A DNA stretch of 64,000 bases from the NCBI GenBank assembly GCA_004764695.1, contig SMSO01000025.1, positions 5,248,862-5,312,861 of the forward strand, in the 5' to 3' direction. Under the pieces are notes generated by a model, which saw only the letters and a program-made list of their open reading frames with translations, made no database searches and was not told where the DNA came from. The stretch comes from Schizochytrium sp. TIO01. Its lineage: Eukaryota; Protista; Bigyra: Labyrinthulomycetes. The first letter of the stretch is position 1. Every line of letters starts with the position of its first letter. The position numbers and the translations under genes were made by a program. This document shows positions 1,605-9,334 of the stretch, piece after piece.

Positions 1605-2035
1605 CTTCTGAACCTCAGTCTCGTGGAGCGTATCTGGAGCGAAGCACTCGCCCAAAACCCAACAAGTGAGGGAGACGGCCTAAGTAGCATAAATTCTTTC
1701 CAACAAAATTAATTCGTTTGATTTAATCAACTGAAATCTGTGATATAAGATTCAGCTGAAGGTTTTAGACGAAAAATATTTTGTTCGATTTTACCCAACG
1801 GATTCATCTCTGTCTAACCCCAAGGGTCAGCGAAGAATACGCTTTTGAGCTCAGCAGACCTTGAACCTTGGTGCGGAACTGTACAAAGACCGACTCTGAA
1901 TAGCGTTGGAGTGTCTGGCCCCAGGCCGTTCTCTGGTGCTTTTTTCAAGCAGTTGAGTAGACACCAAGTTTGGAGGTCACGCGGGTCTTGGTTGTTTGGG
2001 CTTCATTTTTTGGGCTAGTTATAGCATATTGCGTC
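1605..2035. promoter_or_regulatory. Probable bidirectional promoter (EFL1 / OTU gene)
   Basis: Divergent ATGs about 430 bp apart with an AT-rich core near 1690-1800; positional inference only. Confidence 0.4.
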
Positions 2036-3565
2036 ATGGGCAACAGCCAGTCTGAGTCTCGGGTCGCAACGCCAAAGGATGCCTCTCCTGGAGATCGGCG
2101 GAGCATTGCGCTGCTAAGATCATCTTCGGCACTCCTTCAGGAGCTTGTGGAGGAAATTGGCGTTCCGGATGAGACTGCGGTGGAGATCATTCACGAATGC
2201 AACGGTGATGAACTTGGAATTTTGAGGGCTGTCGCAAAGCATATCAATGACAAAGATCCAAACTCCCATCTCAGTGGCCAAGCTCGCTCGAGCAAGCTTG
2301 CAGACAAGTTCAGACGATCTGTCCACGCGAAAGAGATTGAGAGCTTGCGATCCTTAGGGTTTTCTGACGTTAATACACTGCGAGCACTTCGTGAGAATGG
2401 TTATCGTGAGGCTGATGCTATAAAGATGCTGCTTAAGGAGTATCATCGTCAGAGCCTTGCTAACCACCCAACGGCATCATTTCATGAACGTATGTGGTCT
2501 AGGGAGAACTCAAAGGAGTCTAAAGGATCTGGGGCACTTACAATCGGCGACGAGGCGCCACCAACACCGAATTCCACATCAGCTCGGTCGCCACATACTT
2601 CAAGCACAAATATTAGTACTGGCGCTGCAGAAGACCTCAAAACACCTTTCGCAAGCGAATTTCCTGTTGCGAAGGTCACGGAAGCCTGTGAAGTCTCGGG
2701 ATTGAATATTGTGCAGGCCGATCCAATCTTCGTAGAAAGGAAGAACCATGATAAGGCAATGCTACAAGCTTTCCAAGGGCACTCAAGCATAAAGTGGAAT
2801 CCAGCCCTTGTCAGAGCTATGGTTGCGATGAAGCGCAAGGCGGATGATGCTAAGGCATCGGTTCGTAAGCGCGACGGTCCACCGGATTCGACAATAAATG
2901 TTCGCCGAGGCACGAGCCAAACCAACTTACTTAAAGAACGTCTTACTAATTTTGGGATGAGCGAGGTGGTCGTCAGTGGTGATGGCAATTGCCAGTTCCG
3001 GGCGATTAGCAAAGAATTATTTAATACCCAAGATCACCACCTCTGGGTTAGATTCAAGGCCGTGGAGCACATGCGCAACCACCGTGATGAGTTTGAGATC
3101 TTCTTTGGAAGCCCAGAAGAGTTTGAGGCTTACGTCGCAAAAATGTCGTTGCCTCGTGAATGGGGTGACGAACTCACCTTAAAGGCAACTGCAGATGCTC
3201 TTGATATAGTAGTGCATGTTCTTACCTCAACAGAAGGGTTTGGTGGATACTACCTAGAGTACTCTCCGTCAAATAAAGGGTCCCCTCATGGGGTTTTACG
3301 ACATGTGTTTTTGACTTATCTTTCTCCAATGCATTACAATGTGATGACTTTACGCGACGACGAAAGGCGTAAACGACTTTCGGACCGTGCCCGTGATCTC
3401 CTCGCTCGCGCAGACTCCAAGGCTCTTCTCCTACAAGTTCCCTCTATTGATGCTTCTGCAATGCCATCAGATATTGCTTCTATATCATCTTCGTCTTCGT
3501 CCCCATCCTCCTCCTCTTCCTCGAGATCAGTCGGTTCAGATCCTCAAACTCCAGATACTCTCTGA
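2036..3565 (+). CDS. OTU-family deubiquitinase with predicted N-myristoylation site and UBA-like domain(s)
   Basis: ATG at 2036 gives MGNSQS (MGxxxS). UBA-like LRSLGFSDVNTLRALRENGYREADAIKML. OTU core VSGDGNCQFRAIS...EWGDELTLKA...MHYNV with catalytic Cys and His. Confidence 0.88.
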   Translation: MGNSQSESRVATPKDASPGDRRSIALLRSSSALLQELVEEIGVPDETAVEIIHECNGDELGILRAVAKHINDKDPNSHLSGQARSSKLADKFRRSVHAKEIESLRSLGFSDVNTLRALRENGYREADAIKMLLKEYHRQSLANHPTASFHERMWSRENSKESKGSGALTIGDEAPPTPNSTSARSPHTSSTNISTGAAEDLKTPFASEFPVAKVTEACEVSGLNIVQADPIFVERKNHDKAMLQAFQGHSSIKWNPALVRAMVAMKRKADDAKASVRKRDGPPDSTINVRRGTSQTNLLKERLTNFGMSEVVVSGDGNCQFRAISKELFNTQDHHLWVRFKAVEHMRNHRDEFEIFFGSPEEFEAYVAKMSLPREWGDELTLKATADALDIVVHVLTSTEGFGGYYLEYSPSNKGSPHGVLRHVFLTYLSPMHYNVMTLRDDERRKRLSDRARDLLARADSKALLLQVPSIDASAMPSDIASISSSSSSPSSSSSSRSVGSDPQTPDTL

Positions 3566-4414
3566 GCCCTACCATTGATCCCATCTGCTTTGTGGAAAAA
3601 AACACTGATATTAAGATTTCCCAATGTAATGTAAAGTATAAGTGGGTTGTGATACACAAAAGAAGCTTAAACGATTGTTTTGATTTAGACTCACTCAGGC
3701 CGAGGATATTACCTGATGCTAGGGTTTGATATTTTTGAAACAGATCATTTGCTCACTTTAAAACTCAACGTAGTTCTGTGGTTAGAGATGCAATTGATGA
3801 TATGATGTTTACACAGACTCGTCTCTTTCTTCATACCTATACCTCACCGAAGTTGAGGGTTGTAGACAGGTGTGACGCATGGTCATTCGTCTATGGCTAA
3901 GTATAACCCCCCATATAGATCACTTTTCCACATGTAAAACCCTTAAGGCAGTTCTTTCCTGTGAACACTAGTTCTGTAAAACATTCTCCATTTGTGTCCT
4001 AACAATTATAGCAGCATGCATCTTATCCTCCAAGCTTCGCAACTTAAGCTGTGTTCTTAAAGATAACTCTGGGAACAGTTCTCTGCCTTTCGTAGGGCGC
4101 TTATCATCGTCTTTCACAAACCTCGCAGACTCTTCGATACTCGTTCATTTCATAATTGATCCCTTTGTTACATTGGGCTAGTCCCATATAGTAGAGTCCT
4201 ACTGATGATCAATTGCTTTGGAAGGCTAGGTAAGAGGAACTCATAGGGCTCTGTAGGCGTGGAGATGGTAATGTTCTTGGTCGTTTGGCCCTATTTCTGC
4301 TGTGGACAATTGCAAGAGCGATCATCCTGCATAGGCAAACCCTGGAGCTGGACGCGGCGGTCCGTCTCGGCTAGGCTGCGAGGCTTCGGTAGTGTCGCCG
4401 CTACAGCAGTGACG

Positions 4415-6913
4415 ATGAATGTGGTCTTTGCAGCGCCCCGGGACGCACCGCAGACACCCATTTGGTATCGACGTGAGCTCTCTCTGGTGCGCAAGGTCTG
4501 TGAAAATCATGGTGTGGCGTTTTCCGCGCAAGCAGCAACAAGCAGAAGCGTGTCCTCACTTGTCGCTGGTACTCAAAGCAAAGGCGGAATTGTTCATTTC
4601 ATTGGGAGCGGTATATCTGGTGAAAGACTTGTACTAGAAACCGAGCGCGGCAAGGCACACGAGTTCGACCCTGAAACGCTTCGTGGTGCTGCGAGAGGCT
4701 TGGGCCCACCACCGCTGGTTTTTGTCAGCGCCCAGGGCATGGATTTTGCGCAGGATGCAGCAGCTGCCTTCATCAGGACTGGAATTCCGGTAGTTGTATG
4801 CCTCCGAAACCTGAACTTGGACTTCATAGAGACTTTTTATGAAGTGCTGTTTGCACAAGAGGGGGAAACTCCCAAAGTAAAGGTTATAGAGGTCGTAGCT
4901 GAAACTTGCAAGACGCTTGATGTGCCAATGGAAGTGGCAGAGATTATGGTGGCAGAAAATGGGGATGTACAAGAGGTGGAAATTGACTTGGAGCAAATAT
5001 TTTCGCAGAGAAATCACTTCAGGAGGTCTTCAAGTGTGCAGCCGCTGCCGACGGTGATGAACGCCCCTGGTAGCTTCTACGGACGCAGACAAGCCGTGAA
5101 TGAATTATGTAATGCATTATTAGACGCTCACAAAAACATGTTGCTCATTACAGGTTCACCGGGAACAGGAAAATCGGCACTGGCATCACATGTAGTGCAG
5201 TTTGCACTTGAAAGACGCCTCATGCGAGCTGTTTTCCACGTAGATTGCAAGCCACTTGACAGAAGGATACACCATCGCGCTCCGAGCTATGAGCAAGCTC
5301 GATTGCGCTGGACAATTGACATTGCAAATGCAATTGTTCGTGAGTTTGCTGAAAGGACAGGTCAAATCATGCCGCATAATCTGCTAAATGGGAACTTTAT
5401 TACAAGTGAAAACGATGAACGTCTTCAAATTTTGCGAAATAAGCGCAAAGAAGAGATCCTTTCGCAACTTCGGGCTGCTTTGTTAGACTTATTTTCGCTC
5501 GTTAACACACCAAATCGCGAAACAGTGCTCGTACTAGAGAACTGCGAGTCTGTGAGTGCTTGCAACTCTGTATTTATCGAATTTCTACACGAACTACTCA
5601 AATATCTGGACATTAAAATCGTATGTGTGTCGCGTTTTGCGTCACCCATTCTTGGATCTGGATTGCTTCCAGAGAGCATCACTCATGTTGTTCTCGAGGG
5701 AATGGATACATATGCCGCAACGCGATTGCTACAGCACGAGGCTGCACATCGATCGCTACAGCGAGATATAAGAAATGAAACTCTGGTGAAAACTGTTGAA
5801 CGAATGCAGAATGCACAAGTTTGCACGCCGCGTATGCTGCTTGAAGTGGCCCAACATGGCGTATCAAACTGCACGCGCACATACTTAGAAAATCTCTGTC
5901 TTAATGAGCAGGCAATGGTTTTCCAAAACTTTCGTGATATGTTGCGTATTCTTCTCCGCGATGAAGATGCCGATGCGGGGGTGATGTTTTGGCAAAGCTC
6001 GTGCAATTGGATTGGCACGCGCGCTGTAAACCCAGCTCGTACTACATGGACACGGTTTTCTGAAAAATTACGGGCACACTTTGTTGAAAAGGTTGGAGGA
6101 ACACGGCCTCTTAGTGAAGCATCAGCGGAGACCATTGCTGTTAGTTTAGATCGCATCAGCCCAAAGCTCCCTGATGGTCTTAACAACTTTGTGTCTATGT
6201 CACGCTTTGTAAAAGCGTTTTGGCCTTGGTATATATATGCTTTGCGAACCGTACAATTACATAAGAACCTATGGGCGCTCAGGGTAGGCAGTGCTCGCCT
6301 CCCTGTACTCTGGCTTTGTTCTCGTGAAGAATCTGAAAAGCGCCTGCGTCATGCTCCATCAGGTACTTTCATGCTTCGCTTGAGCGAGACTTACCCAGGT
6401 GCTATTGTGGCATCTCTTGTCGGGGATGTAGGTGGATATGGCGGTGGTTTGGGCAATGGCCACTGCTCTTCCATCTCAAGAAGTCCAAGGGATGGGCAAG
6501 GAGCAGGTCCATTTGTACACCCGAATGCTGGTACTCACGGGACACTTTTACTGCCGCCATATCAGCATGGACGGAAACCTCAGTATTATGTTATACAGTG
6601 CCGTAGTGACGGAACTTGCACCTTGGGAAATAGGAGATTTGCTTCATTGAAGCAAGCCATTTTGCAATTAGAAGCATTCAAGAGTGTATATGCGGGTACC
6701 CGTTCATCACCAGGCTCCGTCGCCATACAACAGCAGACACCAACCTCCCCACACCATTTGCAAACAGCTCGGACCTCTCTGACACCACCTGACCCCAAAA
6801 GCATCAGAAATTCACCGATGCGCCATGACCAAACAGGTACCGGTTGCACCATGACTTCAATGCTGCCCCCTGTTGCCCCTACACCATACCCTGAGCGCCC
6901 TGCACGCCAACAT

Positions 6914-6958
<45 letters not shown>

Positions 6959-7057
6959 CAACAACAAGGCCAGCCTCACCACCACCACCACCACCACCAC
7001 CACCACCATCACAACTACGAAGTAGTTCCTAAAAAATTAATTTTCTACAACACTTAA
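4415..7057 (+). CDS. CHAT-like (inactive) + STAND/NB-ARC-like P-loop ATPase + STAT-type linker-SH2 protein
   Basis: Long ORF; first plausible ATG at 4415. IVHFIGSG...LVLETERG...LVFVSAQ...AAAFIRTGIPVVVC follows the CHAT pattern. FYGRRQAVNEL, GSPGTGKS, LVLENCE and IVCVSR follow STAND motifs. RPLS...FWPWY...LW...CSREESEKRL...GTFMLRLSETYPG follows the STAT linker-SH2 pattern. Confidence 0.8.
6917..7012 (+). repeat. Coding (CAG)n/(CAA)n polyQ followed by (CAC)n polyH
   Basis: Seen directly; encodes about Q17-GQP-H12 just before the C-terminal NYEVV motif. Confidence 0.95.
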
Positions 7058-7415: not shown

Positions 7416-8483
7416 CTATCTCCGGACCTTGCGCATGTGGCTGAGGTCAGGGCTCTTGCGGTGCTCATTACGCTCTCCGGAGCCATAGAGAGCATTATTA
7501 AAGGCCGTGAAGAGAGCCTGGTAGCGGCTTGAAGAGGCGCCTGTCATGAGCAAATTACTGGAAAGGCGGCGCTCAAGCTGGCGTGGGTCATCCGAGTCCA
7601 GAGGTGGGATGACCTGGGAGGCCTCTGCAGCACGGAGTCCATCTCTCGCCGTCCTGTCAGAGCGCATGTCTTGTGTGCCACTACTTGTAGCAACGCTTGA
7701 GTCATAGTACCCAGAGTAGCTATCTAGGAGTGGAGTTTCGTCAGAGATGGAGGCTGCTGACGGCGAAAGCGCGGCTGCGCCTTGCGACTCAGCACTCTCA
7801 ATATCACTACTCTCTGAGAAGCTGCGACTAAGTGCAGATGAGTTGAGGTCTATATACTGGTAATCAGGTTGGTCTCGAGGCCGCAAGGAAGCCACTCCAA
7901 GCAGAACACATGTTGCGGCATAGCAGCCCCTAACAATATGGGCGATGCGGCTTTGATGAACCTCTGCATGCATGATAAAGATCACTACACTAATCGAGAA
8001 CTCCACAATCCACCAGAGTCTAAGGCACGTAAAAGATGGCAAGTGTCTTCTATACCCAAGCACAAGCAGTGCCATTGACACCAGCCAGCTCAAGCTCGTC
8101 AGTGCCATCGATGTCTTCACTGCCGGCGACGCCGGGTCGTCATCAATTGTTAGCACAATAGCACATACCAGTGCCACTACCGTGAGAAGCAACTTCACCA
8201 GAAATCTCCATGAAGGCGCCGGTTTCACTTCTGGCTCTCGAAGCACTCTTCGAAGGCGAGGCACCGCGTAGACTAGGAAAATGAATGCAGTTGGCAGCTC
8301 CACAACAGTACTACAGAAGCACATTGTCAGTGCATTTCCATTAGAAGTCGTCGGGCCCCATCCAGTGAGATCATCGCACCACCCATTCATTGTCTGTACA
8401 CCCTGACCATTTTGCGCTAGAGTGTCATTCATAGTCCTAAAAACACTCTCAAAGGTGCTGGAGTTTGCGACGCCGTCACTCAT
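7416..8483 (-). CDS. Membrane protein consisting of an ABCC/MRP-type TMD0 (about 5 TM) plus a disordered tail, with no ABC domain
   Basis: ATG 8483 MSDGVANS. WC..GWGP....LTMCFCSTVVELP...LRLWWIVEF resembles the ABCC TMD0. Ser-rich tail with DETPLL dileucine motif. The upstream ORF extension reads through an SSR and is probably UTR. Confidence 0.65.
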   Translation of the reverse strand: MSDGVANSSTFESVFRTMNDTLAQNGQGVQTMNGWCDDLTGWGPTTSNGNALTMCFCSTVVELPTAFIFLVYAVPRLRRVLREPEVKPAPSWRFLVKLLLTVVALVCAIVLTIDDDPASPAVKTSMALTSLSWLVSMALLVLGYRRHLPSFTCLRLWWIVEFSISVVIFIMHAEVHQSRIAHIVRGCYAATCVLLGVASLRPRDQPDYQYIDLNSSALSRSFSESSDIESAESQGAAALSPSAASISDETPLLDSYSGYYDSSVATSSGTQDMRSDRTARDGLRAAEASQVIPPLDSDDPRQLERRLSSNLLMTGASSSRYQALFTAFNNALYGSGERNEHRKSPDLSHMRKVRR

Positions 8484-8535
8484 GGTGCTCGTGGCAGCGT
8501 TGCTTGGCGAAAGGACCTCTTGTGACACGCAAAGG

Positions 8536-8566
8536 CGAGACGAGACGAGACGAGACGAGACGAGAC
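8536..8566. repeat. (CGAGA)6 pentanucleotide microsatellite
   Basis: Seen directly, just upstream of the TMD0 gene ATG. Confidence 0.9.
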
Positions 8567-9334
8567 AACGCCAGACCAGCCGACCGCCCCGCTGGCCTGC
8601 TAGCCTGCCGCAAGCAAGGCTCGGGCGGCTGTCTCGCAGAGCGTCAAGCGAGAAGCTCGAATTGTAGCTCTGATGTGGTTTTCTCTCCCCTTTTCCTAAC
8701 AAGAGTTGTTCTTATTCCATTACATTTCTGCCTATATTGTGCTATATGTATTTATTTGAGGGTGACGATGACGACGCTTATAATAAATAAGGTTCTTTCC
8801 CTCATATTGTTCATACTGTTCATATTCTTCACATTTTTCATATATTAGGTCTTGAAACTTTGCCGGGAAAACTGCATATTCAATGGGGTTTCTTGCATTC
8901 TCGATGCAGGAGACCCTGCAGTAATTAAGGTTTCTCGGAATGTAAAACGCCTTGAGAAAACCGTGGTTCTTTTCCAGTCCGCACCTTTTGCTTTTCTCAC
9001 CACTGCCACATCAATGAAAATGACCCTTTCTTTATCGAAGTCCATGCAAAATAGTATTACCCATTCTGTCTTTGCAAACCAGTCCCTTTTACACACACAA
9101 TAAACATTATGGTGATATCCGGATAAGCTACTTAATTTGATCAATTACTATAAACTTTATCTAAATAACTGATTTGCGAAAGTAGAGCATAATGAGAATA
9201 TCTCGCTTTATAAGTAGCTTATAATGACAGAGAGAAATAGTAAGAGAGAGAAGGAAGGAGAAGCGGAGGCAGTTCGAAGGCGCAGCAGAAGCGCAACGTG
9301 AGCTTTGAGCAGCAGTGCCGAAGCAACTGAAACC

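Follow-up and report, generated by a model that had tools for sequence, protein, structure and literature searches.

Which kind of protein is encoded by a long open reading frame (ORF) of the thraustochytrid Schizochytrium sp. TIO01, and what might it respond to? The question is raised by a stretch of 64,000 nucleotides (the window; GenBank contig SMSO01000025.1, positions 5,248,862 to 5,312,861), for which an original prediction, made from the letters alone, had proposed a protein comprising a CHAT-like region, a STAND ATPase and a STAT-type linker-SH2 module. The ORF is a complete single-exon coding sequence of 880 codons plus stop (4415..7057, + strand). The three-part order has been borne out by profiles, structure prediction and fold search, and the ORF and the quoted motifs (GSPGTGKS at nt 5153, LVLENCE and VCVSR) were found where they had been placed. 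The order of effector, nucleotide-binding oligomerization domain (NOD) and C-terminal module is that of NLR-like receptors, with a linker-SH2 as the C-terminal module and not LRR, WD40 or TPR repeats. The reading that we favour, and regard as probable with considerable room for doubt, is that of an expressed NLR-like tripartite protein (CHAT fold, STAND, linker-SH2) that lacks the catalytic dyad, is gated by phosphorylation and has a non-catalytic output.

The C-terminal module is a linker-SH2 of the STAT type, closer to STATs than to other SH2 classes according to profile comparisons and a predicted structure. For residues 496-762, an AlphaFold 2 (AF2) model computed with 26 relatives as input has a predicted local distance difference test (pLDDT) score of 80.5 and shows five long helices, then the alphaA-betaB-betaC...betaD-alphaB succession of an SH2 fold. 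The helical linker occupies residues ~505-617 (5927..6265, +), with RPLS at 564-567 and FWPWY at 602-606, and the SH2 domain, also found with Pfam, residues ~618-760 (6266..6694, +). Pfam SH2 (PF00017) scores 26.6 bits with the whole protein and 30.1 bits with the C-terminal part (cut-off 21). This match is confined to profile positions 7-43 because a Gly-rich disordered insertion of ~45 residues between betaC and betaD (residues ~676-717; 6440..6565, +; pLDDT <50 at model residues 181-222) splits the domain. Pfam STAT_linker (PF21354) reaches 14.1-16.1 bits in the query, under the cut-off of 27, and 25.9 bits in a relative (P0004); the linker is assigned to the query because relatives and structure carry it.

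Searches against known structures point to the same relationship. With the single sequence, phmmer against the Protein Data Bank (PDB) returned Dictyostelium STATa (Dd-STATa; residues 505-670) and STAT2, STATs being the only SH2 proteins found, and the top 23 ranked Foldseek matches of the C-terminal model are all STATs (STAT6, Dd-STATa, STAT5, STAT2). In VIA-align, Dd-STATa aligns with Z 14.9 over 177 aa (model 17-266), and STAT6/5/2/1/3 align with Z 11-14 over 179-196 aa of linker and SH2, from model residues 1-19. More than 20 plain SH2 structures align over the SH2 half only (model residues 122-264; Z 9.9-10.3), and the STAT linker-SH2 matches exceed these SH2-only matches by 4-5 Z units. 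A profile of 24 family members matches STATs in the PDB over profile positions 514-749 (Dd-STATa 108 bits, 4.8e-30; STAT6 97 bits, 1e-26), whereas the best non-STAT SH2, that of SHP2, scores 51 bits (8e-13).

The residues of the phosphotyrosine (pTyr) pocket are intact (R637, R655, S657, E658 and T659), and the domain is a candidate pTyr binder. The alphaA2 basic residue, R637 (6323..6325, +), is Lys or Arg in 23 of the 24 family members. R655-L-S657-E658-T659 (6377..6391, +) comprises the betaB5 Arg and an 'RFSES'-type motif, of which the Arg and the Ser are each found in 23/24 members. R655 sits in FMLRLSE within GTFMLRLSETYPG (residues 650-662), so the betaB5 Arg is retained, as had been proposed. 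We take these residues to be the equivalents of K591, R609, S611, E612 and S613 of STAT3, R637 standing for K591. Behind the SH2 domain follows a low-complexity tail (residues 761-880; 6695..7054, +) with a polyQ-polyH tract at nt ~6914-7012 and three tyrosines (Y825, Y868 and Y878); no counterpart of this tail is present in the relatives P0002 and P0003 (alignment A2).

At the other end of the protein, residues 1-200 (4415..5014, +) are predicted to form a CHAT domain with the caspase-hemoglobinase fold, on the strength of an AF2 model (pLDDT 87.6), fold search and relatives. The best PDB match of the model is SAVED-CHAT 8tl0 (Foldseek E 4e-6; VIA-align Z 16.2 over 177 aa), and the next are gingipain, separase, caspases, metacaspase and legumain (Z 10-13). 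Csx29 aligns with Z ~10.3-10.8, CED-3 and the caspase-8:c-FLIP complex 3h11 are also among the fold matches, and the family profile finds SAVED-CHAT in the PDB at 1.5e-15. Pfam CHAT (PF12770) gives the query 12.9 bits, under the cut-off of 24, and the domain is called because relatives and structure carry it: the region aligns, with E down to 1e-9, with proteins that score 36-60 bits on Pfam CHAT. Of the CHAT and STAT linker matches that had been expected, the structural ones were thus obtained, and those with Pfam remained sub-threshold for the query.

Both catalytic residues of the CHAT domain are gone. In alignments A2 and A3, S65 (4607..4609, +) occupies the position of the catalytic His (LHYTGHG in the family, VHFIGSG here) and Q107 (4733..4735, +) that of the catalytic Cys (FVSACHS in the family, FVSAQG here), so the protein cannot be a protease. 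On its sequence, the query is a pseudo-protease paralogue. The dyad is kept in 17 of the 24 sequences of A3 (query included), truncated there in 2 and lost in 5; the two columns read S/Q in the orthologue from Hondaea, T/N in P0002 and S/H in P0003. The proposed CHAT-STAND switch therefore stands with respect to its CHAT fold and STAND module and falls as a protease-armed device, since S65 and Q107 replace the dyad.

Between these two parts lies a STAND-type P-loop NTPase with a helical/winged-helix arm (residues ~217-500; 5063..5914, +), assigned with Pfam AAA_16 (44.8 bits; cut-off 32.6) and AAA_22 (28.4 bits). For nSTAND1/3, NPHP3_N, NACHT and NB-ARC the query is under the cut-offs, and relatives are above them in the NACHT, NB-ARC and nSTAND models. 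The Walker A motif GSPGTGKS (residues 247-254; 5153..5176, +) includes K253, a Lys that is invariant in A3. The Walker B strand is VLVLENCE (5525..5548, +), in which LVLENCE covers residues 372-378 (nt 5528-5548) and E375 stands at an acidic position that is Asp in 21 of the 23 other A3 sequences and Glu in the query and P0003. Further on, R407 (5633..5635, +; sequence and alignment A2) closes VCVSR (residues 403-407), and CVSR is presumably the 'hhhTSR' sensor-1 motif of STAND NTPases.

This architecture is not a one-off, as wider searching showed. An exhaustive HMMER search of 1.84 billion representatives gave 53 matches at E<=1e-3, and CHAT, NTPase and linker-SH2 occur together in about half of them (local re-scoring, with which Pfam agrees); when clustered at 50% identity, the proteins with all three domains make up at least about 25 clusters. 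Over A3, Pfam finds CHAT in 21/24 sequences (up to 60 bits in the relatives), SH2 in 18/24, NACHT in 17/24 and NB-ARC in 10/24. Named members are uncharacterised proteins of Saprolegnia diclina (XP_008612470.1), Phytophthora cactorum and P. idaei, two Hondaea proteins, one of which is automatically mislabelled 'STAT A', and transcripts of the cercozoans Partenskyella glossopodia and Mataza sp., so that the family ranges over stramenopiles and Rhizaria. It surfaced in the exhaustive search, the Hondaea orthologue being the sole match of a word-index search and bacterial P-loop proteins dominating a profile search. The ESM Atlas yielded only bacterial CHAT-AAA_16 clusters, the clusters of the eukaryotic family being too small for that index. 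Searches of the accessible full-text literature found no description of a CHAT-STAND-SH2 architecture, in agreement with the original prediction, which knew of none; subscription papers were outside their scope and may contain a prior mention. The CHAT-STAND-linker-SH2 family is apparently undescribed.

A second gene of this architecture is present in the same genome, for which the assembly was searched (64 Mb, 37 contigs; the window is on C24). It has a 1000-codon frame (C34:3451503-3454502; L011:1004-4003), an intact dyad (HFTCHG, FVSACFS) and an SH2 pocket that reads K/R/S/E/S, and an MMETSP transcript matches it at 99% identity. This C34 paralogue is ~19% identical to the query and surfaced with Pfam/profile searches; when the two halves of the query were searched against the genome, no close paralogue came up. 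In a quick maximum-likelihood (ML) tree with SH-aLRT support only, the two genes belong to separate clades. The query, its Hondaea orthologue, P0002 and P0003 form a dead-dyad clade (SH-aLRT 100) on a long branch, a clade in which the Walker A lysine and all of the pTyr pocket are preserved, and the C34 paralogue groups with the second Hondaea protein. P0022 joins the dead clade on a long branch, an unreliable placement. As the active and the dead paralogue each have an orthologue in Hondaea, the duplication is older than the two genera.

Related domain combinations were also noted in this genome. Two CHAT-STAND genes without SH2 are located at C32:1996296-1997906 and C33:219285-221126, one in a 5063-codon frame and the other in a 1617-codon frame. 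In a 647-aa ORF (C31:7520439-7521188; L002:997-2937, -), a pair of SH2 domains in tandem (67 bits) is accompanied by a Cbl_N3-like match, and a linker-like stretch ahead of the first SH2 is also picked up with the family profile. In an 853-aa ORF (C33:986495-986902; L007:178-2736, -), TPR repeats occur together with an SH2 match of borderline score (20.7 bits), another unusual SH2 architecture.

The start of the gene is supported by homology: from ATG 4415, MNVVFAAPRD pairs with Met1 of Hondaea fermentalgiana FCC1311_064392 (P0001), the only close named homologue, which is 44% identical to the query over 623 aa. The whole open frame (4259-7057, +) includes an in-frame stretch upstream of this ATG. 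In-frame ATGs at 4265 and 4271 precede the homology-supported start and fall inside the longer of two contig 5' ends (4124 vs 4321), and 5 nt are deleted at 4223 in other strains. These ends belong to gene-sized contigs from two public runs, of 2,820 nt over 4124-6903 (X1) and 2,622 nt over 4321-6903 (X2), neither of which has a splice joint within the ORF. Gene-sized contigs over the ORF are present in many runs, those of neighbouring genes are set apart by uncovered gaps, and depth differs from gene to gene. The data fit one unspliced putative transcript with all three domains, the contigs being probably derived from RNA, and the single transcript that had been called for is thus matched by putative transcript contigs without joints, the ORF not being split into separate genes.

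The only interruption of the contigs is at the CAG/CAC repeat, 6904-7022 (~17 Gln, then 12 His). Every assembly breaks there, so the length of the repeat may vary between strains. Within the ORF, the window and the strains of these runs show 15 differences, of which 9 are synonymous and 6 non-synonymous, a proportion that suggests purifying selection. In two other runs one contig (3300-6903) links the gene to an upstream OTU gene, which could be read-through, overlapping untranslated regions or DNA. The product of that gene (1970-3565, +) is a deubiquitinase of the OTU family (531 aa; OTU 65.9 bits), which also has a weak UBA-like stretch and ends in a Ser-rich tail. On the other side, a 428-aa ORF (7416-8702, -) has the TMD0 domain of ABC transporters as its sole match (PF24357, 53 bits) and gene-sized contigs of its own; its product resembles a TMD0-like membrane protein that stands on its own.

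How such a protein might work can be outlined by analogy with STAND/NLR and SH2 proteins, from which pTyr gating, oligomerisation and CHAT proximity activation are all borrowed. The linker-SH2 would stand where other STAND proteins have their TPR, WD40 or LRR sensors, and because an SH2 domain holds the sensor position, a phosphorylated motif is the likely input. The module would dock on such a motif of a partner, most likely one with phosphotyrosine, and docking would recruit or un-lock the NTPase and lead to oligomerisation. In the active paralogues, CHAT proteases would in this manner be brought together and activated by proximity, apoptosome-style. The query copy would instead have a non-catalytic output: like pseudo-caspases, it could serve as a scaffold, trap substrates or modulate the active pathway. 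The genome encodes at least 143 kinase domains of the PK_Tyr_Ser-Thr type and at least 2 classical protein tyrosine phosphatases (PTPs), so writers and erasers of the mark are plausible.

Several points weigh against this phospho-gated reading. The RNA nature of the contig-bearing runs is a guess, and the gene model of the Hondaea orthologue ends before the SH2 domain. With Glu for Asp in Walker B and CTP where the family has a GHP motif, NTPase competence is uncertain. PF07714 also matches tyrosine kinase-like (TKL) and dual-specificity kinases, so the 143 domains do not single out dedicated tyrosine kinases. An SH2 domain with the same Arg can read phospho-Ser, as in Spt6 (PMC3507883). Any role given to the dead protease domain is guesswork.

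Other readings of the same gene have to be set beside it. The dead-CHAT protein may be a dominant-negative or decoy that co-assembles with the C34 paralogue and tunes or blocks protease activation, the SH2 domain merely targeting both to the same phospho-site; c-FLIP acts so on caspase-8. We hold this to be possible, if on balance doubtful. An active paralogue of the same architecture in the same genome would provide the target, the Hondaea orthologues of both indicate that the pair is old and retained, and the dyad was lost while the SH2 pocket and P-loop were kept; however, the ~19% identity of the paralogues makes mixed NOD rings less likely. A complex prediction for the dead CHAT (1-200) and the active CHAT of the C34 paralogue scored 0.00, which counts neither way. 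The SH2 domain, for its part, may read phospho-Ser/Thr or an unphosphorylated partner, or be only a structural or dimerisation domain, and there would then be no pTyr gating. The Spt6 SH2 domain, which keeps the invariant Arg and binds the Ser-phosphorylated C-terminal domain in organisms without tyrosine kinases (PMC3507883), is a precedent; moreover, the kinase-domain count cannot separate tyrosine kinases from TKL, and a long disordered insertion splits the domain. Yet the pocket fits the STAT pattern at every checked position (K/R alphaA2, R betaB5, S-E-S/T) and is conserved in 23/24 members across stramenopiles and Rhizaria, the nearest relatives in sequence and structure are pTyr-binding STAT SH2 domains and not Spt6, and classical PTPs are encoded in the genome. 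We consequently regard the absence of pTyr gating as unlikely.

Two further explanations lose most of their appeal when the whole protein is considered. As the linker-SH2 is closest to STATs and the Hondaea paralogue carries the database label 'STAT A', the protein could be a STAT-like nuclear factor: once dimerised by reciprocal SH2-pTyr contacts, its linker-SH2 and Q/H-rich tail would serve transcription, and the ATPase would have a regulatory part. PolyQ/polyH tails are common in transcription factors and count for this view. Coiled-coil and STAT DNA-binding domain are missing, however, the N-terminal 500 residues being CHAT fold and STAND NTPase; PF02864 (STAT DNA-binding) is unmatched in the genome, which is a weak negative; and the Q/H tail is absent from P0002 and P0003, with no conserved tail tyrosine seen. 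A nuclear factor is thus very improbable, and the query was rejected as a true STAT because the region before its linker is STAND NTPase and CHAT fold. The loss of both catalytic residues, the Walker B Glu for Asp and the low-complexity expansions could also mean that an active CHAT-STAND-SH2 gene was duplicated and that this copy is without function and in decay. Against this speak the intact 880-codon frame, the 44% identical orthologue, a dead-dyad clade of four members, the excess of synonymous differences, the gene-sized contigs in many runs and the conserved SH2 pocket and P-loop; its probability is close to negligible, and the pseudogene reading was rejected on the intact frame, orthologue, synonymous excess and conserved motifs. 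Chance motif resemblance was considered and rejected as well, the domain calls being well above chance.

If the phospho-gated, NLR-like reading is correct, its significance extends beyond one gene. NLR-like STAND proteins sense ligands via repeat domains, and SH2 domains are regarded as belonging to tyrosine-kinase signalling of the animal type. With a STAT-type SH2 joined in a conserved manner to a STAND NTPase and a caspase-like protease, a phosphorylation mark would be able to drive a protease machine that is activated by proximity. Labyrinthulomycetes, oomycetes (among them pathogens of plants and fish) and cercozoans have this fusion, a hint that in these protists phosphotyrosine signalling is connected to machinery of the cell-death type. 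As a dead and an active paralogue coexist in a thraustochytrid that can be transformed, the system can be approached by experiment. The linker-SH2 unit has been proposed to predate STATs (PMC3670131), and the CHAT-STAND-SH2 family is a concrete non-transcription-factor home for this unit outside Amorphea and plants, which bears on the origin of STATs. More speculatively, and as an idea that may be right without being likely, STAT-type SH2-read pTyr could directly trigger a self-contained apoptosome-like CHAT-protease platform across stramenopiles and Rhizaria. This would be a cell-death or immune switch outside animals, with dead paralogues as built-in regulators, and its corollary would be that the linker-SH2 is an ancient free-standing module of STAND/caspase machinery and not specific to transcription factors.

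Among known systems, the query shares with the CHAT-STAND proteins of bacteria and eukaryotes (CHAT-NACHT/AAA_16/NB-ARC) an N-terminal CHAT fold directly before a STAND P-loop NTPase. However, these proteins end in TPR or WD40 repeats, whereas the query ends in a STAT-type linker-SH2 and has lost the His/Cys dyad. With the STATs (Dd-STATa, 1uur/1uus; STAT6, STAT5, STAT1-3) it has in common a helical linker packed on the SH2 domain, the residues of the pTyr pocket and a motif run of the LW..GF.S....L....GTF.LRFSE type. Unlike them, it is without N-domain, coiled-coil, DNA-binding domain and recognisable tail phospho-tyrosine, and its module is joined to an ATPase and a protease fold. The likeness to the Apaf-1/CED-4 apoptosome with caspase-9/CED-3 would consist of an oligomerising STAND NTPase and a caspase-fold protease activated by proximity; in the query, protease fold and NTPase are in one chain, an SH2 domain replaces WD40 and the protease is dead. 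In this last respect it resembles pseudo-caspases of the c-FLIP type, in which a caspase fold without catalytic residues is retained under selection beside an active paralogue, although the query has no death-effector domains and heterodimerisation is only putative. SAVED-CHAT (CBASS/type III CRISPR) and the TPR-CHAT protein Csx29 (Craspase) likewise place a CHAT output domain under sensor control; they are catalytically active and sense through a SAVED domain or a CRISPR complex, in contrast to the dead query with its SH2 and STAND. The C34 paralogue has the same three-domain order and a preserved SH2 pocket and, unlike the query, has kept the His and Cys.

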